Part shown: positions 477 to 22,162 of the stretch, piece by piece
How the letters are laid out: the number at the start of each line of letters is the position of its first letter
How positions within the stretch are numbered: the stretch's first letter is position 1
Assembly (NCBI RefSeq): GCF_006345805.1
Contig: NW_021823716.1
Span: 1-22,162 of the forward strand
Reading direction: 5' to 3'
Origin: Octopus sinensis
Taxonomy: Eukaryota
DNA: 22,162 bases
Notes under the pieces: model-generated
Database searches by the model: none
The model's input: only the letters and a program-made list of their open reading frames with translations
What the model was told of the DNA's origin: nothing
Program-made: the position numbers and the translations under genes

Positions 477-879
477 TCGACTGATTTGCACTAGTCGGCC
501 GCCGACGTCGTGGATATTACCGTAATTTTACCGCCAAGCAGTGTTTAGGCATAAGCAAAGTTTAGGTCAGTTAACACATGTGTGTAACACGATCCAACTG
601 TTAAAACGCATATCCATTGCAGTTAACACGGAGAAAAATTCTCTCTGTAGTTTCACACCCTGTCAGGATTCACAGACATTGTTTCCCGTCTCTTTCAGGT
701 AGTTTCATGATAATCAATATTTCAATGTTGTCCTTTATATCGACCTAGACGTGTACGGTTCTTTAGTGGTTTAAATGGGAGTTAACCCTTACAAATTTTG
801 CTTCCCTTATGAATAATTGAATCATATGTTCCAGTTTTATAAGGGTCATATATCTATCTGGGTGACGGTTTCACTTGTA

Positions 880-1059
880 TTTCGTCTGCCGTTACGTTCT
901 GAGTTCAAATTCCGGCGAGGTCGACTTTGCCTTTCATCCTTTCGGGGTCGATAAATTAAGTACCAGTTACGCACTGGGGTCGATATAATCGACTTAATCC
1001 GTTTGTCTGTCCTTGTTTGTCCCCTCTGTGTTTAGCCCCTTGTGGGTAGTAAAGAAAGA
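880..1059 (+). mobile_element. 5'-truncated tRNA-type cephalopod SINE with Tx1-like tail and 13-bp TSD
   Basis: Matches the reverse complement of the full copy at 2621-2852 (GTTCAAATTCC B-box-like motif, GTCGACTTTGCCTTTCATCCTTTCGGGGTCGAT core). GGTTTCACTTGTA occurs at 867-879 and 1060-1072. Confidence 0.85.
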
Positions 1060-1413
1060 GGTTTCACTTGTAGTTCATTATTTGGATAAATATGGTGATG
1101 GCTGTAACGGTTACGGGATTAAATGGACCTGATGTTCAATTTTAACCATGTTATGATAGATTTGAGATTAGATTTCTCTCTCTAACACACACACATGGGA
1201 ACTAGCGCAGAAGCAAATTCTCGCATGCACGCAGTGAAAATTCATACTGCATCCAGAGTGATAATTTTAGAACTAAAGAAATTATTCTGATCAAAATAGA
1301 CAAGTAAAACACTTCAGAGTGTTGCCAAACCATGGCTGCGGTTCAAAAATTGATGCCAGTGAAAACTCACAGATATCCATATATTCATTCATGTATATAA
1401 GCATAAATAATAC

Positions 1414-1544
1414 GTATATATATGTGTGTGTGTGTGTGTGTGCGTGTGTGTATGTATGTATGATATAAATGTATTATATATATATATACATACATACATA
1501 CATACATAAACATATATATATGTATATATATATATGTATATATA

Positions 1545-1577
<33 letters not shown>

Positions 1578-1590
1578 AAGATAGATACAG
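1414..1590. repeat. Compound (TA)n/(TG)n/(TACA)n microsatellite
   Basis: Read directly from the sequence. Confidence 0.9.
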
Positions 1591-1597
1591 ATATGGG

Positions 1598-1700
1598 GAC
1601 GGGCTTCTTTCAGTTTCCGCATAACAAATCCGCCCACAAGGCTTTTGTAGAAGACATTTCGCAGTGGGACTGAACCCAGGACCATGTGGTTGATAAGCAA
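1598..1700 (-). mobile_element. Fragment of OR-like octopus SINE (5' half, internally deleted)
   Basis: Reverse complement matches the head of the 8809-9241 SINE (GGTTCAGTCCCACTGCG and GGAAACTGAAAGAAGCCCGTC). Confidence 0.75.
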
Positions 1701-2162
<462 letters not shown>

Positions 2163-2164
2163 TC

Positions 2165-2330
2165 TTGTTTAAAGAAGCACCATGATTCACTGGCTGCTTT
2201 TAAAAATGTTAAATAATTGAATAAGTTCCTTGGCTTCAATAGGAAGCGTATTCCACCATTTCCGGCACTTCTGAAAGACAAAAATTTTGTCTGCTCACAC
2301 AAGTCTTACGATTGTTCGTTATGTTTCATC
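2165..2330 (-). pseudogene. Possible decayed 3' end of a CR1/L2-type LINE ORF2
   Basis: Frameshifted minus-strand reading LSFRSA..WWNTLPIEAKEL..TFLKAASESW resembles the WNSLP..FK C-terminus of CR1/L2 proteins. Short and recognised by eye only. Confidence 0.4.
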
Positions 2331-2459
2331 CATAATTAAAAAGTTTTCAAGACTTTCAGTAATTCAAAGTTTGCCTAACTTTAAATTATAATACATAATT
2401 CCCCCCCCCCACACATTATTTTATTCTTTTACGCGTTTCAGTAATTTGACCGCCGTTAT

Positions 2460-2600
2460 GTCGAACCGCGAAGTTACGGAGACATCGGTTGTCAAGCGAT
2501 GGTGGTGGGAGCCTACAAGCATAAATACAAAGGCACACACATTATATATATATACGACGGGCTTCTTTCAGTTTCCGTCTACCAAATCTGCTCACAAGGC
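2460..2600 (-). mobile_element. Middle fragment of OR-like SINE
   Basis: Reverse complement gives CTTGTGAG..GATTTGGTAGACGGAAACTGAAAGAAGCCCGTCG-(TA)n-..CGCTTGACAACCGATG..GCGGTTCG, as in the 8809-9241 SINE. Confidence 0.75.
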
Positions 2601-2620
2601 AGATATATGAACTTATACCT

Positions 2621-2852
2621 ATTTCTTTACTACCCACAAGGGGCTAAAGACAGAGAGGAAAAACAAGGACAGACAAACGGATTAAGTCGATTACATCGAC
2701 CCCAGTGCGTAACTGGTACTTAATTTATCGACCCCGAAAGGATGAAAGGCAAAGTCGACCTCAGCGGAATTTGAACACAGAACGTAACGGTAGACGAAAT
2801 ACCGCAAAGCATTTCGTCCGGCATGCTAACGTTTCTGCCAGCTCTCCGCCTT
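2621..2852 (-). mobile_element. Full-length tRNA-type SINE with Tx1-like tail and 9-bp TSD
   Basis: Head AAGGCGGAGAGCTGGCAGAAACGTTAGC, then GTTCAAATTCC, core, and tail TAGCCCCTTGTGGGTAGTAAAGAAAT. CTTATACCT occurs at 2612-2620 and 2853-2861. Confidence 0.85.
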
Positions 2853-2869
2853 CTTATACCTTATACCTG

Positions 2870-3131
2870 TCTATTTTCTTATATACTCCTATGTGAGTTT
2901 TACCTGTGGGGGGTTACACAAATGAGGAGGTGCACAAGACAAAACCTCGCACACTGGAGGATTGGAGACACGGATTCAGGAGATTCTCAAAGATACGCAA
3001 GACGACATCCTTCAGAAGGATGTTCATTACATCCATGGCCGTTTGAGGAAACTGGTTGACGTAATAAACTTGTAAAAGGAATCTGGATTTTATTACCTAT
3101 TTTTAATTGTACTTACTTTTCACCCAACCTG
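2870..3131 (+). mobile_element. Tc1/mariner-superfamily transposon remnant: transposase C-terminus plus right TIR
   Basis: Frameshifted reading FYLWG..EEVHKTKPRTLED(L)ETRIQEILKDTQDDILQKDVHYIHGRLRKLVD resembles the DFFLWG..KPRTLEEL C-terminus of maT/rosa-type transposases. Ends ..CACCCAACCTG followed by TA. Confidence 0.7.
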
Positions 3132-3152
3132 TATGTATATATATATATATAT

Positions 3153-3184
<32 letters not shown>

Positions 3185-3264
3185 TATATATATATATACG
3201 ACGGGCTTCTTTCAGTTTCCGTCTACCAAATCTGCTCACAAGGCAGATATATGAACTTATACCT

Positions 3265-3495
3265 ATTTCTTTACTACCCACAAGGGGCTAAAGACAGAGA
3301 GGAAAAACAAGGACAGACAAACGGATTAAGTCGATTACATCGACCCCAGTGCGTAACTGGTACTTAATTTATCGACCCCGAAAGGATGAAAGGCAAAGTC
3401 GACCTCAGCGGAATTTGAACACAGAACGTAACGGTAGACGAATACCGCAAAGCATTTCGTCCGGCATGCTAACGTTTCTGCCAGCTCTCCGCCTT
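3265..3495 (-). mobile_element. Duplicate of the 2621-2852 SINE
   Basis: Second unit of the 644-bp duplication. Confidence 0.85.
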
Positions 3496-3512
3496 CTTAT
3501 ACCTTATACCTG

Positions 3513-3772
3513 TCTATTTTCTTATATACTCCTATGTGAGTTTTACCTGTGGGGGGTTACACAAATGAGGAGGTGCACAAGACAAAACCTCGCACACTGA
3601 GGATTGGAGACACGGATTCAGGAGATTCTCAAAGATACGCAAGACGACATCCTTCAGAAGGATGTTCATTACATCCATGCCGTTTGAGGAAACTGGTTGA
3701 CGTAATAAACTTGTAAAAGGAATCTGGATTTTATTACCTATTTTTAATTGTACTTACTTTTCACCCAACCTG
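3513..3772 (+). mobile_element. Duplicate of the Tc1/mariner remnant
   Basis: Second unit of the 644-bp duplication. Confidence 0.7.
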
Positions 3773-3846
<74 letters not shown>

Positions 3847-4146
3847 CATACATTTCAACAATTGAGGGTAAAATTAATTAATTAATCAATTTCACCAAGT
3901 ATTCAGTATGCAAAGGGTCCATTTAAGGCGAATTCAAATTATTACATTATACAAAAGGGCTTAGTAAAATAAATTACTTTGCCGCATACTGAACTCATTA
4001 GAAATAGCAGCCAAAAAAAAAAAAAAAAAACTTTTCTAAAACTATTTCTAATACTTAAAGAAAACCTCTCTCATATAGTGTTTGCTCAATTCAACTCACG
4101 AAAGTATGGGGGTAGAGACATTAAAAAATCAAATGCAAAGGTTATT

Positions 4147-4199
4147 TGAGAACGTACGTTTCAAGATTAGTCAAACTCGACATTTCTATCATCAGCTCA
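4147..4199 (-). ncRNA. Type I hammerhead ribozyme motif L1
   Basis: Minus strand reads UGAG CUGAUGA UAGAAAUGUCGAGUUUGACUAAUCUU GAAAC GUAC GUU CUCA: core boxes present, stem I UGAG/CUCA. Confidence 0.75.
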
Positions 4200-4711
4200 G
4201 AACTCCCTGGTTTGGATTTGAAAACACTGAAAGTGGGAGCATACCCTTTCGGCTTCTTCTCGCTTCTGAAGATCTGCTCGACACTAACAGTGCCAACAAA
4301 CTCAAAAATGCAAGCGAAGAATTTCTGCTCTCCCCTTTCCACCAGCGTGGGTTAAAATCAGTAAACACTATGCTTTTTTACGGTAAAATCCGAGGCATTA
4401 TATAGAGAGAGATGAATTATAATTTCAACAATTGAGGGTAAAATTAATTAATTAATCAATTTCACCAAGTATTCAGTATGCAAAGGGACCATTTAAGGCG
4501 AATTCAAATTATTACGTTATATAAAAGGGCTTAGTAAAATAAATTACTTTGTCGCATACTGAACTCATTAGAAATAGCAGCCAAAAAAAAAAAAACTTTT
4601 CTAAAACTATTTCTAATACTTAAAGAAAACCTCTCTCATATAGTGTTTGCTCAATTCAACTCACGAAAGTATGGGGGTAGAGACATTAAAAAATCAAATG
4701 CAAAGGTTATT

Positions 4712-4766
4712 TGAGAACGTCGTACGTTTCAAGATTAGTCAAACTCGACATTCTATCATCAGCTCA
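4712..4766 (-). ncRNA. Type I hammerhead motif L2 (extra 3 nt near stem III and 1-nt deletion in stem II; variant or read error)
   Basis: Same motif with small indels. Confidence 0.55.
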
Positions 4767-5275
4767 GAACTCCCTGGTTTGGATTTGAAAACACTGAAAG
4801 TGGGAGCATACCCTTTCGGCTTCTTCTCGCTTCTGAAGATTGCTCTCGACACTAACAGTGCCAACAAACTCAAAAATGCAAGCGAAGAATTTCTGCTCTC
4901 CCCTTTCCACCAGCGTGGGTTAAAATCAGTAAACACTATGCTTTTTTCGGTAAAATCCGAGGCATTATATAGAGAGAGATGAATTATAATTTCAACAATT
5001 GAGGGTAAAATTAATTAATTAATCAATTTCACCAAGTATCAGTATGCAAAGGGACCATTTAAGGCGAATTCAAAATATTACGTTATATAAAAGGGCTTAG
5101 TAAAATAAATTACTTTGCCGCATACTGAACTCATTAGAAATAGCAGCCAAAAAAAAAAAAACTTTTCTAAAACTATTTCTAATACTTAAAGAAAACTCTC
5201 TCATATAGTGTTTGCTCAATTCAACTCACGAAAGTATGGGGGTAGAGACATTAAAAAATCAAATGCAAAGGTATT

Positions 5276-5328
5276 TGAGAACGTACGTTTCAAGATTAGT
5301 CAAACTCGACATTTCTATCATCAGCTCA
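5276..5328 (-). ncRNA. Type I hammerhead motif L3
   Basis: Identical core to L1. Confidence 0.75.
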
Positions 5329-5838
5329 GAACTCCCTGGTTTGGATTTGAAAACACTGAAAGTGGGAGCATACCCTTTCGGCTTCTTCTCGCTTCTGAAG
5401 ATCTGCTCGACACTAACAGTGCCAACAAACTCAAAAATGCAAGCGAAGAATTTCTGCTCTCCCCTTTCCACCAAGTGGGTTAAAATCAGTAAACACTATG
5501 CTTTTTTCGGTAAAATCCGAGGCATTTATAGAGAGAGATGAATTATAATTTCAACAATTGAGGGTAAAATTAATTAATTAATCAATTTCACCAAGTATTC
5601 AGTATGCAAGGGACCATTTAAGGCGAATTCAAATTATTACGTTATATAAAAGGGCTTAGTAAAATAAATTACTTTGCCGCATACTGAACTCATTAGAAAT
5701 AGCAGCCAAAAAAAAAAAAAAAACTTTTTAAAAACTATTCTAATACTTAAAGAAAACCTCTCTCATATAGTGTTTGCTCAATTCAACTCACGAAAGTATG
5801 GGGGTAGAGACATTAAAAAATCAAATGCAATGGTTATT

Positions 5839-5891
5839 TGAGAACGTACGTTTCAAGATTAGTCAAACTCGACATTTCTATCATCAGCTCA
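5839..5891 (-). ncRNA. Type I hammerhead motif L4
   Basis: Identical core to L1. Confidence 0.75.
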
Positions 5892-6392
5892 GAACTCCCT
5901 GGTTTGGATTTGAAAACACTGAAAGTGGGAGCATACCCTTTCGGCTTCTTCTCGCTTCTGAAGATCTGCTCGACACTAACAGTGCCAACAAACTCAAAAT
6001 GCAAGCGAAGAAATTTGCTCTCCCCTTTCCACCAGCGTGGGTTAAAATCAGTAAACACTATGCTTTTTTCGGTAAAATCCGAGGCATTATATAGAGAGAG
6101 ATGAATTATAATTCAACAATTGAGGGTAAAATTAATTAATCAATTTCACCAAGATTCAGTATGCAAAGGGACCATTTAAGGCGAATTCAAATTATTACAT
6201 TATATAAAAGGGCTTAGTAAAATAAATTACTTTGCCGCATACTGAACTCATTAGAAATAGCAGCCAAAAAAAAAAACTTTTCTAAAACTATTTCTAATAT
6301 TTAAAGAAAACCTCTCTCATATAGTGTTTGCTCAATTCAACTCACGAAAGTATGGGGGTAGAGACATTAAAAAATCAATTGCAATGGTTATT

Positions 6393-6445
6393 TGAGAACG
6401 TACGTTTCAAGATTAGTCAAACTCGACATTTCTATCATCAGCTCA
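6393..6445 (-). ncRNA. Type I hammerhead motif L5
   Basis: Identical core to L1. Confidence 0.75.
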
Positions 6446-6780
6446 GAACTCCCTGGTTTGGATTTGAAAACACTGAAAGTGGGAGCATACCCTTTCGGCT
6501 TCTTCTCGCTTCTGAAGATCTGCTCGACACTAACAGTGCCAACAAACTCAAAAATGCAAGCGAAGAATTTCTGCTCTCCCCTTTCCACCAGCGTGGGTTA
6601 AAATCAGTAAACACTATGCTTTTTTCGGTAAAATCCGAGGCATTATATAGAGAGAGATGAATTATAATTGGCATGAATTATGTTGGCACTGTTAGGTGTC
6701 GAGCAGATCTTCAGAAGCGAGAAGAAGCCGAAATGGTATGCTCCCACTTTCAGTGTTTTCAAATCCAAACCAGGGAGTTC

Positions 6781-6833
6781 TGAGCTGATGATAGAAATGT
6801 CGAGTTTGACTAATCTTGAAACGTACGTTCTCA
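6781..6833 (+). ncRNA. Type I hammerhead motif R1 (predicted cleavage after U6829)
   Basis: TGAG 6781-84, CTGATGA 6785-91, stem II 6792-6817, GAAAC 6818-22, GTAC loop, GTT 6827-29, CTCA 6830-33. Confidence 0.78.
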
Positions 6834-7343
6834 ATAACCTTTGCATTTGATTTTTTAATGTCTCTACCCCCATACTTTCGTGAGTTGAATTGAGCAAACA
6901 CTATATGAGAGAGTTTTCTTAAGTATTAGAAATAGTTTTAGAAAAGTTTTTTTTTTTTTGGCTGCTATTTCTAATGAGTTCAGTATGCGGCAAAGTAATT
7001 TATTTTACTAAGCCCTTTTATATAATGTAATAATTTGAATTCGCCTTAAATGGTCCCTTTGCATACTGAATACTTGGTGAAATTGATTAATTAATTAATT
7101 TTACCCTCAATTGTTGAAATTTAATTCATCTCCTCTCTATATAATGCCTCGGATTTTACCGAAAAAGCATAGTGTTTACTGATTTTAACCCACGCTGGTG
7201 GAAAGGGGAGAGAGCAGAAATTCTTCGCTTGCATTTTTGAGTTTGTTGGCACTGTTAGTGTCGAGCAGATCTTCAGAAGCGAGAAGAAGCCGCGAAAGGG
7301 TATGCTCCCACTTTCAGTGTTTTCAAATCAAACCAGGGAGTTC

Positions 7344-7396
7344 TGTGCTGATGATAGAAATGTCGAGTTTGACTAATCTTGAAACGTACGTTCTCA
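7344..7396 (+). ncRNA. Type I hammerhead motif R2 (stem I strand TGTG instead of TGAG)
   Basis: Core intact; one stem I mismatch. Confidence 0.65.
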
Positions 7397-7897
7397 AATA
7401 ACCTTTGCATTTGATTTTTTAATGTCTCTACCCCCATACTTTCGTGAGTTGAATTGAGCAAACACTATATGAGAGAGGTTTTTTTTAAGTATTAGAAATA
7501 GTTTTAGAAAAGTTTTTTTTTGGCTGCTATTTCTAATGAGTTCAGTATGCGGCAAAGTAATTTATTTTACTAAGCCCTTTTATATAATGTAATAATTTGA
7601 ATTCGCCTTAAATGGTCCCTTTGCATACTGAATACTTGGTGAAATTGATTAATTAATTTTACCCTCAATTGTTGAAATTATAATTCATCTCTCTCTATAT
7701 AATGCCTCGGATTTTACCGAAAAAAGCATAGTGTTTACTGATTTTAACCCACGCTGGTGGAAAGGGGAGAGCAGAATTCTTCGCTTGCATTTTCGAGTTT
7801 GTTGGCACTGTTAGTGTCGAGCAGATCTTCAGAAGCGAGAAGAAGCCGAAAGGGTATGCTCCCACTTTCAGTGTTTTCAAATCCAAACAAGGGAGTC

Positions 7898-7950
7898 TGA
7901 GCTGATGATTAGAAATGTCGAGTTGACTAATCTTGAAACGTACGTTCTCA
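7898..7950 (+). ncRNA. Type I hammerhead motif R3
   Basis: Core intact; 1-nt indels in the stem II region. Confidence 0.65.
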
Positions 7951-8459
7951 AATAACCTTTGCATTTTTGATTTTTAATGTCTCTACCCCCATACTTTCGT
8001 GAGTTGAATTGAGCAAACACTATATGAGAGAGGTTTTCTTTAAGTATTAGAAATAGTTTTAGAAAAGTTTTTTTTTTTTTGCTGCTATTTCTAATGAGTT
8101 CAGTATGCGCAAAGTAATTTTTTTACTAAGCCCTTTTATATAATGTAATAATTTGAATTCGCCTTAAATGGTCCCTTTGCATACTGAATACTTGGTGAAA
8201 TTGATTAATTAATTAATTTTACCCTCAATTGTTGAAATTATAATTCATCTCTCTCTATATAATGCCTCGGATTTTACCGAAAAATGCATAGTGTTTACTG
8301 ATTTTAACCCACGCTGGTGGAAAGGGAAGAGCAGAAATTCTTCGCTTGCATTTTTGAGTTTGTTGGCACTGTTAGTGTCGAGCAGATCTTCAGAAGCGAG
8401 AAGAAGCCGAAAGGGTATGCTCCCACTTTCAGTGTTTTCAAATCCAAACCAGGGAGTTC

Positions 8460-8512
8460 TGAGCTGATGATAGAAATGTCGAGTTTGACTAATCTTGAAA
8501 CGTACGTTCTCA
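8460..8512 (+). ncRNA. Type I hammerhead motif R4
   Basis: Identical core to R1. Confidence 0.78.
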
Positions 8513-8703
8513 AATAACCTTTGCATTTGATTTTTAATGTCTCTACCCCCATACTTTCGTGAGTTGAATTGAGCAAACACTATATGAGAGAGGTTTTCTT
8601 TAAGTATTAGAAATAGTTTTAGAAAATTTTTTTTTTGGCTGCTATTTCTAATGAGTTCAGTATGCGGCAAAGTAATTTATTTTACTAAGCCCTTTTATAT
8701 AAT

Positions 8704-8725
8704 ATATATATATACATATATTTTT

Positions 8726-8765
<40 letters not shown>

Positions 8766-8808
8766 TGTATATATATACATATATATGTATATATATGTAC
8801 ATATATAT
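8704..8808. repeat. (TA)n-type microsatellite at the right end of the array
   Basis: Read directly from the sequence. Confidence 0.9.
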
Positions 8809-9242: not shown

Positions 9243-9277
<35 letters not shown>

Positions 9278-9280
<3 letters not shown>

Positions 9281-9343
9281 GAAAGAATAGCTATATATAT
9301 AGTAGAAAGAATAGCTATATATATAGTAGAAAGAATAGCTATA
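9278..9343 (+). repeat. Three copies of a 24-bp unit GTAGAAAGAATAGC(TA)n
   Basis: Unit starts at 9278, 9302 and 9326. Confidence 0.9.
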
Positions 9344-9412: not shown

Positions 9413-9445
<33 letters not shown>

Positions 9446-9448
<3 letters not shown>

Positions 9449-9674
9449 GATACAGGATAAAATTTTTTTCGGGAAAAAAATTTTATCAATGGCCAGCATA
9501 TCAAAAAATGCCTTTAAAGGTAAAAATTATACATAATTTACAAGATAAGGGCAGAAGAAAAATTCTAGTGCCAGATACGCCAAAACAAAAAATTGTCGAT
9601 AACCATTAAATTTATGCATAATTTAATGGTTCCCGACAATTCTTTTGTTTCGGCGTATCTGGCATTAGAATTTT

Positions 9675-9677
<3 letters not shown>
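9446..9677. other. (TA)n-flanked palindrome-rich element of unknown family
   Basis: 15-bp perfect inverted repeat 9456-9470/9473-9487, and a ~123-bp near-perfect palindrome at 9555-9677. Confidence 0.7.
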
Positions 9678-9713
<36 letters not shown>

Positions 9714-9736
9714 ATATATATATATATATATTATAG

Positions 9737-9767
<31 letters not shown>

Positions 9768-10162
9768 CTATATACTATACATACACAATTATTGATGTGT
9801 ATATACATTTCTGTCCGTACATACACGCACACATATATAATTACTGCTAGTCATAACGTGAAAGGATGTATGCACTCTTTCGTAATTGACTGACATACGT
9901 GCATCATTTAATATGGAATCCATTTTGTAGGAACATCCATTCCGTTAATCTAAATAAATTTTATATCTGTAACCACTCTAATAATTAGTATAGATACCTC
10001 AACACAGTTAATCCTTCAACTTGAAATATAATATATTTCTACAGACAAGAAGAAACCAAATTTGAATTGGGAAACGTACGGTGAGATTTCTTTTCTTATT
10101 CCTTCTCTCTTTCCATACGTCTGTCGCCTGTTAAGTGCGAGTATATTATTAACTGCTATTAA

Positions 10163-10800: not shown

Positions 10801-11307
10801 TCGCTTTTTGCAGAAATTTGAAGGTCCAGTGCTGAAGGCCCGTTATGAAGGTCCATCTCTTTACCTCCATTTGTTATACAACGCAGTTTGGTACCGTTGT
10901 GTTACTGGGTAAAGAATTTCTAGTATGCCCTAAATTTGAGCAATGCTTTTGAGTGAAATTTGTTAGATGGGAAGCGTTCAGAAGCCTATCCTATTCGCTC
11001 TACTCATAAGGGAAACATTACAGGATTTCTAGATGTGCGTTGAATTTGAGGTCAACGAGATACAAGATCAAACTATAATTGATTAGAGGTGTTTGATATG
11101 TAAATAATGTACATTTTCATAAATGTGTGTGGACGTGTGTGCGGTATGCACGAAAAAATCTGAACCCATCACACATATTCGCAGATCACTTCCTTGGGGT
11201 TGCATTTGTCAGTTCTTTCATTTGCGATTCCAGTGCCAGACTTCATCTCCATTTCTTATGAAAACGGATATTGTGTAACTTCTTAGAGCGAGATGGCGGA
11301 AGAGTAA

Positions 11308-11312
11308 GATAG

Positions 11313-11343
<31 letters not shown>

Positions 11344-11385
11344 GATAGATAGAGAGATAGATAGAGAGAGAGATAGATAGATATA

Positions 11386-11430
<45 letters not shown>

Positions 11431-11457
11431 GAGATAGATAGATAGATAGATAGATAT
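11308..11457 (+). repeat. (GATA)n array, 3' flank of copy B
   Basis: Read directly from the sequence. Confidence 0.95.
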
Positions 11458-13509
11458 GTTTCTTTATAGCCACACAGGGCTGCACAGATAGAACAAATTA
11501 CAGGTAGAGCTTTTCTTTTGAAGGTTTAAAAAAAAAAAAAGGAAGGGGGAGTTTCGATCAAAAGGATCGTAAAAGGAGAGAAAGAGAACAAAAAAAGGGG
11601 TTAAAAAAGGGGGAGAGGAAAAAAAAAAAACATTTTGTCAATAGGGATCGTTATCACAGAAATGTCAATATGAAGTGTAAAGGGGAGGACAGGTGAGGTT
11701 TACCCGTGGAAAGAAAAGCCTACGGAAAAGACCACGGTAACCTCGGTCAATGGAGTCACATGTTATATTTCTTTTTTTTTTTTTTGCAAATAAGCAACTC
11801 TCTGTTTTCAATTTCTGGGTTCATAGGATCATGCTCAAGGTGGCTACATTCACCCATCTTTTTTTAAAACATTCGCTAGACAAAACTTGCCTCTCTACTC
11901 TCACTTTCCTTTTCAAGTGGTACTTGAAGAAGTTGATGAGAGATTGACCAGAGAGGAAAGTGTTTGTCTCCAATCCTTTCAGACGCGTCCACCAGATACA
12001 TTCTTTCGCCATAGCCACAAGGATGATGAAAATAGCTCTTCTTCCCGTTTGAAGGAGGGAGGCGTGACACATATAACGATAGACTCAGCTGATAAACCGA
12101 CTCGTCCCACACGTGACAGCAGTTGTTCGACACCAAGCCCACAGGTCGGAAATTGTTGGACACTGCACGAGTGCATGCAGAACGGTTTCGTCGCTCTGAC
12201 CGCATCTCGGGCAGGTCGGCCCCGTGTTTCTCGAGCCGTGTCTGTAGAGCTTATCCCGAAAGGGTAGCGCTTCTGGTAGCACTGCCAGGCCAGGGATCTC
12301 TGGAAGTTGTCCATGGGCCCTGGCCGAAAGTCGTCCTGAACAGGCGGGTCAGGTACTCCTCGTCGACGTCCAGGTTCGCCCCGAGCTCGTCGTCGTACAT
12401 CCCCTCCACTAAACCCTATAGAATGCTTTGGTTGTGTTGAAGTCACTCAAGGTCGACCCAGGACGGCAGAGTTGCTTGAGCAACGCGACACTCGCGGTGC
12501 ATTCGCCCTTCTTCGGCCTCTTTTTGATCCACGACTGCAGTTCGGTCATGGAGACGAGCTGCGGGAAAGCGTGCCTCACAAACGGCGACCACACCTGTTC
12601 ACCGTCGTCTACATAGAGCCAGAGATGTCGCAGTCTCAGCGCGTGTCTGCGCATCATCAACCACGGCATGCCCAGCCCTCCTTTTAACGGGTGTTGACAG
12701 CAAATGGATCGCCTGACCATCGGGACGCATCCTTTCCACAAGAAGCGAAAGAGAATGCGTTGTAGTTTGGTGATGGTAGGGTCGGGACAAGGTACGCACG
12801 GTCAGGCGGTAGTAGATTACGGACGCGATGTACGTGTCGCCACCTCCGCCCGACCTTTTAGGGACAGTTTCCTCTCGGCCCATTGCCGGGCGAGAGTGAC
12901 CACCCTACTCGTTATCTCGTTCCAGTTCTTCTCCACTTGGAGGTCCGGACCAAACTAGACCCCGAGCAACTCAACCGGGCCGTCGGTCCAGCGTCCCACG
13001 GCGGAGGCGCTGGTGGACGGCATGGGCTTGCTTCTCCAGTGCTAGTCGCAAGCCCACTGACTTTTCCCGGTTGATTTTCGCTCCTGTCACCGCTTCGTAT
13101 TTTTTCAGTGTCTCGCCGACCTGCTCGATGTGCTCGTGGCTAGACACTATGACGGTGACGTCGTCGCGTATGCAGACACGCTCGTCCCGCATCCCAGTTC
13201 TCGCGGGATGCCTCTCAAGGTTGCCAGCTTCGCAATAATGGCTCGAGAGTCAATACGTATAGAAGCGACGAGAGGGGGCATCCCTGACGGACCGAACGTG
13301 CGATGTCGAAGGGTCTCGATAGATGTCATTCACGCGAATTACCGAACGGATGCCTCTGTACAAGCGGCTATCCAGCCGCGGAAGACGGGACCGAAGCCAG
13401 CCGCTCCGAGGACCGCCTCCAAGTATCGATGGTCCACCCTATCGAAAGCTTTCGATGATCCAAATTGATCAGCGCCCCCCCCATGCCAGGTTCGTAACTA
13501 CCCTGTCTA
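11458..13509 (-). mobile_element. Tx1-clade LINE copy B: 5'-truncated, RT C-terminal half, CCHC zinc finger and 3' UTR; ORF2 stop at 11821-11823
   Basis: Frameshifted minus-strand RT motifs (D..KAFDRV, YE(A)VTGAKINREK), CPRCGQSDETVLHALVQC zinc finger, and 3' UTR matching copy D. Confidence 0.92.
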
Positions 13510-13606
13510 GATAGAGATGATAGATAGATAGAAGATGATAGATAGATAGATAGAAGACAGATAAATAGATAGATAGATATATAGATAGATAGATAAATAG
13601 ACTGAA

Positions 13607-13638
<32 letters not shown>
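13510..13638 (+). repeat. (GATA)n then (GA)n array, 5' flank of copy B
   Basis: Read directly from the sequence. Confidence 0.92.
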
Positions 13639-14313: not shown

Positions 14314-17300
14314 CACATTAGGTCAAACACTAACATTACTGAAAACGACATAAAAACAAGTAACCACCCACATACAACACCACCACAACACATTAAAATA
14401 ATACACGTGACACAGAACACATACAGCACCCTGAAATCTCTTTACCCTGATGCAGTAGGGAGATTTCAAAAGTACACATCGAAAAAAAACTGTATAAAAG
14501 CCTCATAGAAGAAGCGTGAGGTGAAAGACAAAGAACTTTCGAAAAACAAGTAACCTTTTCTCTCTCCTTTCCTTTTTTGCACTTTTATCGAACATGCTCA
14601 GAATAGGTAGTATAAATGTACGTGGCTTGGGGTCGCCTTGGAAACAAGGCTACCTGTTAAATGACATCAAGTCACTAAATCTGAATATCATAGCCATCAG
14701 TGAGACCAGACTCCACAGCTTGCGGGCACTCCAGCACATTTTCGGTACACATTTCAACATATTTTTCTCCGTGTCTACCGAGAATGGGCGGAGGTGGCAC
14801 CGCGGTGCTTATCCGGAAGAGTCTGGATCTCAAAGTAAGAGCAAATTTCCTAGACCGGAGGGTAGGCTGGTCGTTTTGGATGTCGATGGCAGCAATGAGT
14901 GTGCTTTTCGACTGATAGCAGTTTATGCTCCGTCCTTAACAGGCCGACCAGATTTCTTTCGACGTCTAGAGTCTTTCATGGGAACGTCTCGTCCTTTACT
15001 TTTAGTGGGGGATTGGAATGCCACCCTGGACACGCATCTAGACTACGTGGGCAGAGATAGCAATAGAAGGGGATGCAAATGCCTCAAAGACCTGCTCAGA
15101 CGTTTCCAACTGTCTGACAGGTACCGACTGGACCACCCGAATGTGCCAATGTGGACATGGAGTAACCGCATCGGGTCGTCCAGATCATACTTAGATAGAG
15201 TATTCTGTAGGACAATAGATAAAAAAGTGTAGGTTGTCCACAATTTCATATAGTCAGTTACACAGATCACAAGTTTGTGACTTGTACACTTGACTTAGAT
15301 AAGACACATAGGCAGGGTCCTGGTTACTGGAAACTGAACGCGTCTTACAGCACGACAGGTTTACAGGGACCGGATCAGCACATTAGTTAAGAGAGCTTTG
15401 ACGGGTACCATCATCAACAACAGATGGTGGTATGCCCTAAAAAAAGCGATTAAAGCAGAATCAGTCAGATACAGTAGAGCCTAGCATTAGACCGAAATAG
15501 AATAGAGGGAGAATTAGTTAAGGTTTTAGAAGAGGCACTTAGAACTGGCATCGCGTCCAACGTACTGGCGGCGAGATTGGCCCTCGACCAACACCTCAAC
15601 GCCAAACACGAGGGATGCGTTGTCAGAGCTAGGAGGTGCGTGCTCTGAGGAACGAAGGAGTTGGAGCCGCCCAAGAGGCCCGAGTGGTGGAGACGCAACG
15701 AGGCAACAGAGCCACCATCAAGTCTCTTATAGATGAACAGGGGCGCGAATTGCTCGAGCCTAAAAGGATGTGTGGGTTTTTTCAACAACACTTCACCCAA
15801 CTGTTTGGGACAAGTGGTGAGTCAGAAAGCAGAGTGGACTTTAGTGCCTACCTGCATGCCTTGCCACGACTCTCAGCAAGGGAGGTGGAGTCTTGTGAAA
15901 AGCCTATCACAGCTGCGGATGTACAGGATGCGATGGTAGGGCTGCGCGAGACAAGTCACCAGCTTGGATGGTCTGCCCTACGAATTTTATTTTCATATGC
16001 CAGACTTGTTTGGAGGCGTCTTGGCAGCTGTCTACTGCAACTGGCAGCAGAACGGGAGTATTCCTGCTTTTGTAAAGCGAGGAGCAGTGGCACTGATCAA
16101 GAAAGACCCAAACAAGGGGACGTCATAGATAATTTCAGGCCCATCACTCTGCTCAACGCAGATTTGAAAATTTTGGCCAAGGTGTTAGCCGAGAGGTTGG
16201 CGCTTGTCATCAAGAAACTAATCGACAAGGCGCAAACATGCGCCGTGCCGGGGGTAGAAGTATTCATGACAACCTCCATCTGATGCGCTACATCATAGAC
16301 AGGGTAGTTAAAAATCCTGGCATGGGTGGGGCGCTGATCAATTGGATCAATCAAAAGCCTTCGATAGGGTAGACCATCACTACTTGGAGGCTGTCTCAAA
16401 GCGGCTGGTTTCGGTCCAGTTTTCCGCGGTTGGATCGCTGCCTTATACAGCGGCATCCGCTCAGTAGTTCGCGTAAATGGTCATCTATCCAGACCTTTTA
16501 ACATCATGCGTTCGGTTCGTCAGGGATGCCCCCTCTCATCGTGCTGTGTATGTACTGACTCTTGAGCCACTACTGCGGAAACTGGCGACGCTGAGGGGCA
16601 TCCCACGAGAGCTGGGATGCGGGAGGAGCGTGTCTGCATACGCGGATGACGTCACCGTCATAGTGTCGAGCTACGAGCACATCGAGCTGGTCGGCGAGAC
16701 ACTGAAAGAATACGAAGCGGTAACGGGAGCAAAAATTAACCGGGAAAAGTCAGTGGGCTTGCGGCTCGGCACCTGGAGAAGCAAGCCCATGCCGTCCAAC
16801 AGCGTCTCCATCGTGGGACGCTGGACGGACGGACCGGTTAAATTGCTCGGGGTCTGGTTCGGTCGGACCCCAAAGAGAAGAACTGGGGCGAGATAACGAC
16901 TAGGGTGGCTACTCTCACCCAGAAATGGACTGAGAGAAAGCTATCCCTAAAAGGTCGGGCGGAGGTGGCGGAACGCGTACATCGCATCCGTCATCGAGTA
17001 TCGTCTGACCGTCGTGCCTTGTCCCGACCCTACCATCACCAAACTGGAACGCATACTCTTCCGCTTCTTGTGGAAGGAAACGTTCCGATGGTTAGGCGAT
17101 CCATTTGCTGCCAACACCCGCTAAATGGAGGGCTGGGCATGCCGTGGTTGATGATGCGCAGACATGCGCTGAGACTGCGACATCTCCGGCGCTTCATAGA
17201 CAACGGTGAACAGGGGTGGTCGCCTTTTGTGCGGCGCGCTTTCCCGCAGCTCGTCTCCTTGGACGAACTACAGTCATGGATCAAGCAGAGACCGAGGCTA

Positions 17301-18317
17301 GGCGAATGGCACCGCGAGTGTCGCGTTGCTCTCAAGCAACTCTGCCGTCCGGGATCGAACTTGTGCGACTCCATCACAACAAAGGCATTCTATAGAGGAT
17401 TAGTGGAGGGGAGGTGCGACGACGAACTCGGGCAGAGTCTGGGCGTCGACGAGGAACACCTGACCCGCCTGTTCAGGACAACTTTCGGGCCGGGACCTAT
17501 GAACAATCACCAAAGATCCCTGGCCTGGCAGTGCTATCGAGAAGCATTACCTGTTCGGATAAGCTCTACAGACACGGTTCCAGACACACTGGACCGACTT
17601 GCCCGAGATGCGGTCAGAGCGACGAAACCGTTCTGCACGCACTCGTGCAATGTCCAACCATTTCCGACCTGTGGGCTTATGCCGAACGGCTGCTGTCACG
17701 TGTGGGACGAATCCGCCTATCGGCCGAGTCTATCGTGAGAATTGCTCCGCCCCCTTCCCTCAACCGGGAAGGCAAGGCAGTTTTCATCGTACTGGTGGCC
17801 ATGGTGAAAGAATGTGTGTGGTGGACTCGAGCGAAAGGATTAGAGAACAAAACTTACCTCTCTGGCCAATCGCTCATCAACTTTTTCAAGTACCACTTGA
17901 AAAGGAAGGTGAGAATGGAGAGGAAGTTTTGTCTCGCGAAAGATTCAAAAAAAGATGGGTGAATGTTGCAAAGATGGTGCGTGCTAGTAACGAAACCATT
18001 TTGAGCATGATCCTGTAGATCGTAAAAAAGAAAGAAAGAGAGCATTTTGACATCATGGTTTATTCCTCCCTGACTGGGTTCCCGTGGTCTTTTCTGTAGG
18101 CTTTTTCTTCCCACGGATGAACCCAATCTTGTTATATCAATGTTTACAACCATTATTCTGTGATACACGATTTTCTTTTTTCCTTTTTTTTCCTCCTCTC
18201 GATCCCTTTTGATCGCCATCTTACATTTTTTTATTTTTTTTCCACCCTCGAAAAGAAAAGCTCTGCATTTGTATGTGTCCCCTCTGTATTCAGCCCTGTG
18301 TGGCTAATAAAAGAAAG
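14314..18317 (+). mobile_element. Tx1-clade LINE copy C: ORF1 3' remnant (14314-14553), complete ORF2 region, 3' UTR
   Basis: Full APE-RT-zinc finger order; ends GGCTAATAAAAGAAAG; TATC repeats on both sides. Confidence 0.93.
14594..18018 (+). pseudogene. ORF2 (APE endonuclease, reverse transcriptase, CCHC zinc finger) of the L1/Tx1 clade, broken by many 1-nt frameshifts in this sequence
   Basis: APE motifs SINVRGL, AISET, VYAP, VGDWN, SYLDRVF, TDH, YWKLN. RT motifs NFRPITLLNADLKILAKVL, QTCAVPG, DQSKAFDRVDH, RQGCPLS, YADDV, GAKINREKS, LLGVWFG. Zinc finger CPRC..H..C. Confidence 0.92.
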
Positions 18318-18318
<1 letters not shown>

Positions 18319-18377
<59 letters not shown>

Positions 18378-18394
18378 ATATCTATCTATCTATC
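18319..18394 (+). repeat. (TATC)n array between copies C and D
   Basis: Read directly from the sequence. Confidence 0.95.
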
Positions 18395-18408
18395 TGTGGG
18401 CTTTGCCC

Positions 18409-20339
18409 ACATCATAGACAGGGTAGTTAACGAACCTGCATGGGTGGGGCCCTGATCAACTTGGATCAATCTAAAAGCCTTGATAGGGTGACCATCTATC
18501 CTTGGAGGCATCTGAGAGCGGCTGGGTTCGGTCCCGTCTTCCGCGGCTGGATAGCTGCCTTGTACAGAGGCTCCGTTCGGTAATTCGCGTAAATGGACAT
18601 CTATCGAGACCTTTCGACATTGCACGTCGGTCCGTCAGGATGCCCCCTCTCGGCGCTTCTATACGTATTGACTCTGAGCCACTATGCGGAAGCTGGCGAC
18701 TCTAAGGGGCATCCCGCGAGAATGGGAGGATGCGACGAGCGTGTCTGCATACGCGGACGACACGTCACCGTCATAGTGTAAGCCACGAGCACATCGAGCT
18801 GGTCGGCGAGACACTGAAAACTACGAAGCGTGACAGGAGCGAAATCAACCGGGAAAAGGTCAGTGGGCTTGCGACTAGGCACCTGGAGAAGCAAGCCCAT
18901 GCCGTCCACCAGCGCCTCCGTCGTGGGACGATGGACCGACGGCCCGGTTGAGTTGCTCGGGGTCTGGGTGGGTCCGGACCTCCACGGGGGAGAGAACGGA
19001 ACGAGATAACGAGTAGGGTGGTCACTCTCGCCCGGCAATGGGCCGAGAGGAAACTGTCAAAAAGGTCGAGCGGAGGTGGCGAACACGTACATCGCGTCCG
19101 TCATCTAAACCGCCTGACCGTCGTACCTTGTCCCGACCCTACCATCACCAAAATACAACGCATTCCTCTTTCGCTTCTTGTGGAAGGATGCGTCCCCGAT
19201 GGTCAGGCGATCCATTTGCTGTCAAACACCCGTTAAAAGGGGCCTGGGCATGCCGTGGTTGATGATGCGCAGACACGCGCTGAGACTGCGACATCTCTGG
19301 CTCTATGTAGACGGACGGTGAACAGGTGTGGTCGCCGTTTGTGAGGCACGCTTTCCCGCAGCTCGTCTCCATGACCGAACTGCAGTCGTGGATCAAAAAG
19401 AGGCCGAGGAAGGGCGAATGGCACCGCGAGTGTCGCGTTGCTCTCAAGCAACTCTGCCGTCCTGGGTCGACCTAAGTGACTTCAACACAACCAAAGCATT
19501 CTATAGGGGTTTAGTGGAGGGGAGGTACGACGACGAGCTCGGGGGAACCGAACTGGACGTCGACGAGGAGTACCTGAACCGCCTGTTCGGGACGACTTTC
19601 AGGCAGGGCCCATGGACAACTTCCAGAGATCCCTGGCCTGGCAGTGCTACCGAGAAGCGCTACCCGTTCGGGATAAGCTCTACAGACACGGCTCGAGAAA
19701 CACGGGGCCGACCTGCCCGAGATGCGGTCAGAGCGACGAAAACGTTCTGCACGCACTCGTTCAGTGTCCAACAATTTCCGACCTGTGGGCTTATGTCGAA
19801 CAACTGCTGTCACGTGTGGGACGAGTCGGTTTATCAGCTGAGTCTATCGTCAATATTGTCAGCCTCCTTCCTTCAAACGGGAAGGAAGAGCTATTTTCAT
19901 CATCCTGTGGCTATGGCGAAAGAATGTATCTGGTGGACGCGTCTGAAAGGATTGGAGACAAACACTTTCCTCTCTGGTCAATCTCTCATCAACTTCTTCA
20001 AGTACCACTTGAAAGGAAAGTGAGAGTAGAGAGGCAAGTTTTGTCTAGCGAATGTTTTAAAAAAAGATGGGTGAATGTAGCAAGAATGGCACGTATGAAT
20101 GACGAAGCCACCTTGAGCATAATCCTATGAATAGAAATCGAAAACAGAGAGTTGCTTATTTGCAAAAAAAAAAAAAAAAAAAAAAGAAATATAAATGTGA
20201 CTCATTGACCGAGGTTACCGTGGTCTTTTCCGTAGGCTTTTCTTTCCACGGGTAAACCTCACCTGTCCTCCCCTTTTACACTTCATATTGACATTTCTGT
20301 GTGATAACGATCCCTATTGATCAATTTTTTTTCCTCTCC

Positions 20340-20521: not shown

Positions 20522-20666
20522 TATCTATCTATCTATCTATTGTCATCTACCTACTATCTATCTATCTATCTATCTATCTATATATCTATCTATCTATCTA
20601 TCTATATCTATCTACCTATCTATCTATCATCTATCTACATCTATCCATCCATCTATCTACACTATC

Positions 20667-20699
<33 letters not shown>

Positions 20700-20708
20700 A
20701 TCATCTAC

Positions 20709-20743
<35 letters not shown>

Positions 20744-20820
20744 CCTACCTATCTATCTATCTATCTATCTATCTACATATCATCTATCTATCTATCTATT
20801 CTATTATCTATCTATCTACC

Positions 20821-20859
<39 letters not shown>

Positions 20860-20880
20860 CTATCTATCTATCTATCTATC
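20522..20880 (+). repeat. Long (~360 bp) imperfect (TATC)n array between copies D and E
   Basis: Read directly from the sequence. Confidence 0.95.
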
Positions 20881-20884
20881 TCTC

Positions 20885-22162
20885 TGACGGATGTGATGTC
20901 GTTTCAGCTCCGAAGGGTAATCATTTATTTGACTATTTAAAAGTGTATATGACAAAATTTTGTGCTTAAAAGTTGTGCAACAACATCCACTGTAAACCTT
21001 TGATAAATATCGACACAAAATTTTGCCCCTTGTGGGCAAAATTTAAAGAAAAATTCTCATAGCCTTCGTGGTTTCATTTAGCCATTTTATTCCAAAATGG
21101 CCACTGGCCACCACGAGGCTGAGTTGCAAGTGAAGCGTGACGCAGAAACAGAAAAACAGGATGCTCTGTTAGCATACGCCGAACCTGACAACCCACCACC
21201 ACCAACAGCAACAAATACAAAACAAAGGTCGCAAGGCCAAGCACCGTCAACACCATCAGTGAGTCCACCACCACCACCAACACCATGGCAGAATCTGCTA
21301 CTAAAACTGCTATCCCTACTAAAGATATCGCCACCAATAACACATCACCATCACCGCCACCAAAGACCGTGCCGTCAATGTACAATACTACCAACACCAC
21401 CGTCACCAAAGACGACAATAAACAACAAACAACAACCCGACAACAAACAATTCCCTTCAACCACTGCTCACTCCATCACCAACAAGTGAAAAATAACGAC
21501 GAAAGCAAAAGAAAATGGAGAATTTTGCCCTAGTGCAGGACTAAAGTACCGCAGGCAATTTTCCACCCCTTCCTACTAGCACGATCGAACCAAAACACAA
21601 CCAATTTTACAAAATGCAGCCAACAACACACATCACACAAGCAACAACAATAACAAAACAACAACAAATTTCGCTGAGGCGATTAAAGAAAAAAAAAACA
21701 ACAATATACTTTACGGCCCAACAAATACAGGACACGAACATCAAAATAACAGAATCAGAAGGTATAGTAAAATTAACATACCAGAAGATATTTTGGAAAA
21801 TGAAAAAAGACGAACAATCATTTATAAAATAGTTACAAAAAAACAAACACCAGAGAAGGCCAACACAAGAAAATGAGAAGTGCTTGAAACCCCATCTGGG
21901 ATCACAAAGAATAGTACCTGGTGGAACAAATTTGCCCACATACAAGTTGTTTTCTACACCGAAGAGTTAGCTAGACATTCTCAACGCTAACTCTTCACTC
22001 AGATGAACTCCAATTACACCAAGCTATCGGGGACAGAAAGTGACTAAGATCACTCTAAACAATGTCCCCAAAATAGCCAATAGCCTATGGCTTGTAACGG
22101 CCCTATGCGTAAAAATGGCGAACTATACTATTTTGGAAACCACAGTCACAGAGCATAAAAAC
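20885..22162 (+). mobile_element. Probable 5' end of a full-length Tx1-clade LINE (copy E): 5' UTR plus ORF1, continuing past the window
   Basis: Starts right after the TATC array. ATG at 21097 opens an A/C-rich, frameshifted reading with a Pro/Thr-rich N-terminus, then ..AHIQVVFYTEELA..PSYRGQKVTKITLNNVP, which resembles Tx1 ORF1. Composition matches the ORF1 remnant of copy C. ORF2 is not in the window. Confidence 0.65.
21097..22162 (+). pseudogene. ORF1-like (gag-like) coding region, frameshifted in this sequence
   Basis: Consecutive ORF segments 21097-21489, 21285-21533 and 21614-21832 join by 1-nt shifts. The Tx1 ORF1 resemblance is by eye. Confidence 0.55.

Follow-up and report, generated by a model that had tools for sequence, protein, structure and literature searches.

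The analysed window, a stretch of 22,162 nt from the genome of Octopus sinensis (contig NW_021823716.1 of assembly GCF_006345805.1), contains a 4.9-kb block of tandem repeats in which each unit carries a motif resembling a type I hammerhead ribozyme, and which is discussed here as a candidate retrozyme. The block fills positions 3852-8706 and consists of about 8.6 copies of an AT-rich unit with a consensus length of 564 nt and a G+C content of 34.6%. According to a blastn search of the unit against the window, the homology starts at 3852 and ends at 8703 or 8706. These are the limits already given in a first-pass annotation made from the sequence alone, and the unit length of ~565 bp proposed there is likewise in agreement with the individual copies, which measure 554-565 nt and show 96-99% identity among themselves. 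The 564-bp repeat was missed by Tandem Repeats Finder (TRF), since the longest period in the TRF run on the window was 500.

The first-pass annotation described the block as a tandem satellite. This holds true for the repeated units but leaves out the shape of the array, which is made up of two inverted arms meeting head-to-head at 6670-6680. In the numbering used here, unit position 1 is the first base 3' of the predicted ribozyme cut. The array and its immediate borders comprise the following parts:

3773..3850: (TA)n/(CA)n microsatellite at the outer (3') end of the minus-strand arm (TRF period 2, 39 copies)
3852..6669, minus strand: arm of 5.0 units, which in the ribozyme sense starts at 6669 (unit position ~290) and ends at 3852 (unit position ~292) (blastn, unit alignment)
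6397/6396, 5843/5842, 5280/5279, 4716/4715 and 4151/4150, minus strand: predicted cuts of the minus-strand arm (unit alignment)
6670..6680: filler of the head-to-head junction, GGCATGAATTA, 11 nt (read from the sequence, arm ends from blastn)
6681..8706, plus strand: arm of 3.6 units, from unit position ~413 to ~201 (blastn, unit alignment)
after 6829, 7392, 7946 and 8508, plus strand: predicted cuts of the plus-strand arm (unit alignment)
8696..8808: (TA)n microsatellite at the outer (3') end of the plus-strand arm, overlapping the unit's own TATATAAT (TRF period 2, 57.5 copies)

Read in the ribozyme sense, the 5' ends of both arms face each other across the filler and the 3' ends point outward, directly into (TA)n. 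Both outer ends fall within TA-like stretches of the unit itself, namely ATTATAAT and TATATAAT. At the junction the 9-nt sequence ATGAATTAT is present twice (6658-6666 and 6673-6681). A palindrome artefact resulting from a missed sequencing adapter was ruled out as the sole cause of the junction by the different unit phases at which the two arms start (~290 and ~413). None of the four arm ends falls at a ribozyme cut site, and therefore the template of the arms would have been multimeric or circular and not a cleaved linear monomer.

The differences between the copies are mainly one-base insertions or deletions (indels) in homopolymers, which look like residual long-read error. In addition, there are ~20 real substitutions, some of which are common to adjacent units; variants common to neighbouring units were found at unit positions 12, 91 and 200.

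On its left side the array is adjoined by a ~643-bp tandem duplication (2543-3152 and 3187-3793), the copies of which differ by single-base indels only. Each duplicate contains a reverse-oriented 3' fragment of a short interspersed nuclear element (SINE), followed by a (TA)n/(CA)n tract at its end. The duplication could have arisen by recent unequal crossing-over between the microsatellites, or it could be an assembly duplication.

A search for the pattern CTGATGA-N(10-40)-GAAAC resulted in nine matches, of which the minus strand carries five (4158-6441) and the plus strand four (6785-8501), compared to 0.08 matches expected from shuffles of the window. Since the units are copies of one amplified sequence, the nine motif copies have to be treated as a single independent observation. 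The core boxes C3-U4-G5-A6-N7-G8-A9 and G12-A13-A14 occur in type I order in all nine units, the nine motifs are all located on the same strand of the unit, and the register agrees with a cleavage after U6829, all as proposed in the first-pass annotation. Its claim of nine copies of the 53-nt string UGAG-CUGAUGA-[26 nt]-GAAAC-GUAC-GUU-CUCA has to be narrowed: CUGAUGA and GAAAC are found in nine of nine units, but the full string is exact in only six of them and variant in the remaining three. The motifs were furthermore compared with a relaxed type I descriptor, which demands a helix I of at least 4 bp, a helix II of at least 3 bp with one basal mismatch allowed, a helix III of at least 2 bp starting with A-U, and H17. 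It accepted seven of the nine copies and no other site in the 22-kb window. The individual motifs are:

8460..8512, plus strand: reference motif, exact, cut after GUU (8508) (exact 53-nt match, descriptor match)
6781..6833, plus strand: exact copy (53-nt match)
6393..6445, minus strand: exact copy (53-nt match)
5839..5891, minus strand: exact copy (53-nt match)
5276..5328, minus strand: exact copy (53-nt match)
4147..4199, minus strand: exact copy (53-nt match)
7344..7396, plus strand: variant with UGUG in helix I (A2.2 to U), fails the descriptor
7898..7950, plus strand: variant with an extra U after A9 and a loop 2 shortened by one U, fails the descriptor
4712..4766, minus strand: variant with a helix II internal loop one A short and an ACG insertion in helix III (unit alignment)

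The motif at 7344-7396 fails the descriptor because of the UGUG in helix I. The one at 7898-7950 also has a one-base deletion immediately 5' of helix I (GAG-UCUGAG), and its failure is due to this deletion together with the extra U and the deletion in loop 2. In the third variant the ACG insertion, GAAACGUACGACGUU (4716-4730, minus strand), extends helix III from 2 bp to 4 bp (ACGU/ACGU) with a 3-nt loop. If it is real and not a sequencing error, this variant is predicted to fold as a single motif.

In the exact motif, helix I is formed by UGAG/CUCA (4 bp), beyond which follow A.C, A-U, an internal loop and, further out, the stem AGGG/CCUU. The core consists of CUGAUGA (C3-A9) and GAA (G12-A14). 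Helix II has U.U at its base and continues with AGA/UCU, a 3x3 internal loop (AAU/UAA) and GUCG/UGAC, capped by the loop AGUU (7 bp). The pairs A15.1-U16.1 and C15.2-G16.2 form a helix III of 2 bp, which is closed by GUAC, and U17 represents the predicted cut site (GUU). The A15.1-U16.1 pair and the non-G nucleotide H17 (U17) demanded by the descriptor are thus in place. The sequence spanning helix III, ACGUACGU, is a perfect self-complementary palindrome, and cofolding of two motif copies results in an extended palindromic duplex of this sequence. The internal loops start six positions (helix I) and four positions (helix II) from the core, a spacing that presumably corresponds to that of canonical type I motifs with 6-bp and 4-bp helices (PMC4209133).

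Based on its architecture the octopod array probably belongs to a class already known from animals, namely that of tandem repeats bearing type I hammerheads. We consider it a genuine retrozyme-type element that is active now or was so recently, with a probability of about 60%, and we infer both the catalysis and the mobilisation of the array.

The first question to be asked is whether such a motif could have arisen by chance. Applied to both strands of 20 Mb of first-order Markov sequence and calculated per 562 bp, the descriptor is matched at a chance rate per unit of 1.7 x 10^-4 (composition of the window) to 7.9 x 10^-4 (composition of the unit). The occurrence of the motif by chance in a given satellite unit is hence unlikely. 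Genome-wide, a descriptor match alone is not convincing, and some extra weight comes from the features beyond the descriptor, namely the palindrome ACGUACGU, the distal stems past both internal loops and the 6/4 spacing.

The corresponding alternative is that of an ordinary AT-rich satellite bearing a chance hammerhead look-alike, in which case the motif would not cleave, the RNA would have no role and the array would have grown by unequal crossing-over. This appears unlikely to us, given a per-unit chance of just 2-8 x 10^-4 that does not yet take the palindromic helix III, the distal stems and the 6/4 spacing into account, and given a motif context, a low-G+C tandem repeat of a few hundred bp, which is that of real animal hammerheads. 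It is furthermore at odds with the monomer RNA, which is predicted to be far more self-paired than shuffled sequences, and more so on the ribozyme strand. Several observations speak nevertheless in favour of the look-alike and weigh against the retrozyme. Hundreds to thousands of chance descriptor matches (~800-3800) are to be expected in a 2.7-Gb genome, and the nine copies provide a single observation. The variants that adjacent units have in common at positions 12, 91 and 200 and the adjoining ~643-bp duplication both fit a duplication at the DNA level.

Further points on the same side concern the motif itself. GUU triplets are allowed under the NUH rule, yet they are uncommon and cleaved more slowly. 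In a search of the whole window with Rfam 15 at the gathering threshold neither a hammerhead nor any other ribozyme was detected, and at E<=10 no hammerhead family matched the regions 6600-8750 (2151 nt) and 8445-8525 (81 nt), the only matches being chance ones to ctRNA_p42d and sR12. The comparison with the Rfam Hammerhead_1 model, which the first-pass annotation had named as a check, therefore gave no match at either threshold. The G10.1-C11.1 pair is not present, its place at the base of helix II being taken by U.U. This pair is highly conserved even in minimal Penelope-type motifs (PMC4209133). The hand-built hammerhead fold (-4.8 kcal/mol) is thermodynamically disfavoured compared to the local minimum free energy (MFE) structure (-12.7 kcal/mol), with pair probabilities of ~0.7 in helix I, falling to ~0.4 in helix II and ~0.1 in helix III, and the stability of the 91-nt segment containing the motif does not exceed that of its shuffles (z +0.65). 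Preferential conservation of the boxes was not observed: the density of variants in the motif and in the rest of the unit amounts to 0.0088 versus 0.0108 for substitutions and 0.0132 versus 0.0122 for indels, a comparison that rests on near-identical copies (96-99%) of one array. Finally, a search for the exact motif pattern in the JGI metagenomes, the GTDB genomes and IMG/VR revealed no related sequence. The few pattern matches in these collections were dismissed as chance matches, as they are without helices I and II and lie in unrelated surrounding sequence.

For a motif of the animal class, these weaknesses are in part to be expected. A helix III of 1-2 bp with a palindromic loop, with which a single motif cannot cleave and a dimer can, has been described, and Penelope-type motifs show a low activity in vitro (PMC4209133). 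A hammerhead of a Penelope-like element from Anolis cleaved only with the protein of the element present (PMC11167929). Moreover, the axolotl motif HHR_Amex2 resembles the octopus motif in two respects: its helix III consists of 2 bp and a tetraloop, and its helix II starts from a mismatched U.U (PMC7229834).

Apart from the motif, the properties of the whole unit were considered. Compared to dinucleotide shuffles (-117.1 +/- 5.7 kcal/mol), one linear unit of the ribozyme strand folds at -150.6 kcal/mol (z -5.9), and its complement reaches a z-score of -3.7. For the circular consensus the predicted MFE of the ribozyme strand is -152.9 kcal/mol versus -117.3 +/- 6.5 kcal/mol for the shuffles (z -5.5; complement z -3.9). 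In this structure 63% of the bases are predicted to be paired, and the number of G.U pairs is 24 on the ribozyme strand versus 9 on the complement. The asymmetry between the strands in z-scores and G.U pairs suggests that part of the predicted pairing reflects RNA-level structure on the ribozyme strand.

Each unit also contains, on the ribozyme strand, a U run of 9-19 nt inside a hairpin (UAGAAAUAG...CUAUUUCUA). Such a U run would stop RNA polymerase III, and multimeric transcripts would therefore need another polymerase. Frames of ~110-141 amino acids run antisense to the ribozyme and are interrupted by frameshifts between copies, by which a coding function of the unit was ruled out. The 141-amino-acid antisense frame at 8245-8670 showed no relative among 5.8 billion proteins and no Pfam domain. 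ARAGORN detected no tRNA or tRNA-like head, and a scan for bacterial promoters and terminators, irrelevant to a eukaryote, revealed nothing above shuffles.

In its anatomy the array resembles two groups of known elements, in agreement with the retrozyme interpretation of the first-pass annotation as far as the anatomy is concerned; Rfam lends no support to this interpretation. As in metazoan retrozymes without long terminal repeats (Cervera & de la Pena 2020, PMC7229834; Li et al. 2026, 10.64898/2026.07.22.740005), tandem repeats of a few hundred bp carry one type I hammerhead per unit. The unit is likewise non-coding, given that its frames are broken between copies and are without Pfam match or homologue. 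A low G+C content and a highly self-paired monomer are listed as traits of animal retrozymes (PMC7229834), and the octopus unit shares the G+C content below 45% (here 35%) as well as the self-pairing of the monomer RNA, which is predicted here. The 2-bp helix III with its tetraloop corresponds to that of invertebrate motifs, and the U.U at the base of helix II recurs in the axolotl HHR_Amex2 (PMC7229834). A mollusc example is known from a mussel, and a specialist would expect retrozyme-type elements in a mollusc.

Several features distinguish the octopus array from these retrozymes. Its helix II is long and contains a 3x3 internal loop instead of 4 bp and a hairpin loop, the cut triplet is GUU, and the units form two inverted arms and not a single head-to-tail run. 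With 564 nt the unit also exceeds the 170-400 nt quoted for invertebrates, but since published retrozyme consensus lengths range from 51 to 972 bp and average 650 bp in ray-finned fishes (bioRxiv 10.64898/2026.07.22.740005), the length is not distinguishing. The statement of the first-pass annotation that the unit is longer than most others consequently carries little weight.

The second group comprises the hammerheads in the terminal repeats of Penelope-like elements (Cervera & de la Pena 2014, PMC4209133). Like these, the octopus motif combines a short helix I (4 bp) with a helix II that is long (7-8 bp) and has an odd nucleotide where its 5' strand leaves the core; 15.2-16.2 and loop 3 are palindromic, in keeping with a dimer-dependent design. 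Motifs located near each other on opposite strands and AT-rich or (TA)n targets are common to both as well. In contrast to Penelope-like elements, no frame encoding a reverse transcriptase (RT) and a GIY-YIG endonuclease lies between the octopus repeats. Furthermore, the Penelope-like hammerheads keep the G10.1-C11.1 pair that the octopus motif is without, and they have no helix III, whereas the octopus motif has one of 2 bp with a tetraloop. The octopus motif combines Penelope-type helices I and II with a helix III like that of canonical invertebrate motifs.

The similarity to newt satellite 2 and Schistosoma Sm-alpha (Rfam Hammerhead_1, RF00163) lies in the type I topology, the tandem-repeat context and a weak helix III implying cleavage as a dimer. 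Unlike these, the octopus motif is not scored by RF00163, its helix II architecture is different and the nucleotides of the loop-loop contact are unrecognisable.

The following mechanism is proposed for the candidate octopod retrozyme. Transcription of the array would yield a multimeric RNA, in which a lone 2-bp helix III would be too weak, and neighbouring motifs could pair via the palindrome ACGUACGU to form a double hammerhead. Each motif would then cut after GUU, thereby releasing 564-nt monomers that a host RNA ligase may circularise and that would fold compactly, with ~63% of the bases predicted to be paired. A Penelope-like RT/endonuclease encoded elsewhere in the genome is presumed to copy multimeric or circular RNA into AT-rich DNA. 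Priming on both strands of a (TA)n target would result in two 5'-truncated multi-unit arms in head-to-head orientation, an architecture that is itself observed at this locus.

This proposal is consistent with what has been described for Penelope-like elements. They insert preferentially into (TA)n or AT-rich DNA and typically leave behind tandem copies next to which a 5'-truncated copy lies in inverted orientation (PMC8557442). The purified protein of an Anolis Penelope-like element introduces nicks into both strands of AT-rich DNA, extends them and initiates reverse transcription at internal sites of the RNA (PMC11167929). Possible partner elements are documented as well: Penelope-like elements are reported from Octopus vulgaris (PMC13282606), and cephalopods contain remnants of the Naiad clade (PMC8557442). 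By analogy, outward 3' ends in (TA)n together with 5' ends at a microhomology junction would be the expected product of two-strand priming, and the shape of the array suits a Penelope-type insertion better than simple satellite growth.

Some features of the locus argue against this mechanism. The window contains no Penelope RT/GIY-YIG gene, its only RT being that of a degenerate APE-type long interspersed nuclear element (LINE), and within 3852-8706 there is no frame encoding RT and GIY-YIG as an autonomous Penelope-like element would have. The (TA)n tracts make up ~4% of the window and flank other elements as well, e.g. the inverted repeat at 9559-9674, and for this reason the argument from the flanks is only a modest one. 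The flanking microsatellites could also have grown from the TA-rich ends of the unit itself.

According to a second alternative, the units do originate from a genuine Penelope-like terminal repeat or retrozyme. The array would then be an inactive remnant that owes its present form to DNA-level events, namely unequal crossing-over together with an inversion or fold-back repair, or the inverted junction would be a long-read assembly artefact, and in either case the arms would record no two-strand reverse transcription. The predominance of single-base homopolymer indels among the copy differences, typical of residual long-read error, would fit this explanation, as would the variants shared by adjacent units, the 643-bp duplication at the flank and an expansion of the unit's TATATAAT and ATTATAAT, at which the arms end, into the (TA)n flanks. 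The 9 nt that occur twice around the junction (6658-6666 and 6673-6681) are compatible with microhomology-mediated repair. We regard this explanation as decidedly improbable, taking into account that the junction is not a perfect palindrome and that the arms start at ~290 and ~413, which does not correspond to a simple missed-adapter or fold-back artefact. Moreover, head-to-head 5'-truncated copies in (TA)n represent the published signature of Penelope-type insertion (PMC8557442, PMC11167929).

The retrozyme interpretation can be taken one step further. The octopod retrozyme might be active in spite of the U.U at 10.1/11.1, the GUU site and a helix II extended via an internal loop, and octopus tissues might then contain large amounts of 564-nt circular RNAs with extensive base pairing. 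The two arms of the insertion would in this case document, in a natural genome, a target-primed reverse transcription on two strands, which has been shown so far only in vitro for a Penelope-like protein. Taken as a whole, this scenario is a tentative one, and we have more doubt than confidence in it.

The surroundings of the array contain further mobile elements:

8809..~8975, plus strand: SINE-like element beginning with GGGCGCAGGAGTGGCTG and ending in a TA/TG microsatellite tail, with two counterparts of 80-82% identity in the Argonauta hians region described below
11842..13481, minus strand: 3' fragment of the LINE family (Pfam)
14594..~18000, plus strand: frameshifted LINE with APE endonuclease and RT (Pfam Exo_endo_phos, RVT_1)
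18443..20081, plus strand: 3' fragment of the same LINE family (Pfam)

The sole named eukaryotic relative of the LINE frame at 16905-17738 is a protein of Argonauta hians (63% identity). In the 20 kb around the corresponding A. hians gene (GCA_054771915.1) a LINE with 68-69% nucleotide identity to the three LINE fragments of the window was identified. Together with the SINE similarity, this gives good support to an octopod other than Argonauta as the host. The same 20 kb contain no copy of the 564-nt unit and no hammerhead motif. For two shorter SINE fragments in the octopus window (2552-2600 and 3196-3244) the identity amounts to 90%. Terminal inverted repeats indicative of a miniature inverted-repeat transposable element (MITE) or a Helitron-like carrier were not found flanking the array, where only dispersed SINE fragments occur.

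The window is unusually rich in microsatellites. In addition to about nine (TA)n tracts, it contains tetranucleotide microsatellites of the GATA/TCTA family with up to 93 copies (430-472, 2004-2156, 11307-11456, 13508-13637, 18319-18395 and 20522-20885). At 9268-9343 a (TA)16 tract is followed by a perfect 24-bp tandem repeat of 3.2 copies (TATATATATAGTAGAAAGAATAGC). A 32-nt inverted repeat (9559-9590 and 9643-9674; 94% complementary, 52-nt spacer) is located between the (TA)n tracts 9414-9445 and 9677-9783 and looks like a small hairpin or MITE-like insertion into a microsatellite.

In the searchable literature we found no paper on a hammerhead or a retrozyme in a cephalopod. Three points are of note: the host, which is a cephalopod, the unusual design of helix II and of the cut site, and the insertion in two arms. 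Should the element be inactive, it would be one more AT-rich satellite and a caution that relaxed hammerhead descriptors often match by chance in large genomes. If active, it would be a hammerhead variant from nature in which helix II starts from U.U and the cut follows GUU, and as such of use in relating structure to function. An insertion in two arms between (TA)n tracts, if its proposed origin is true, would represent genomic support for priming on both strands by Penelope-like enzymes, and with an active element the cephalopods would join the animals known to have ribozyme-bearing retrozymes and the circular RNAs derived from them.

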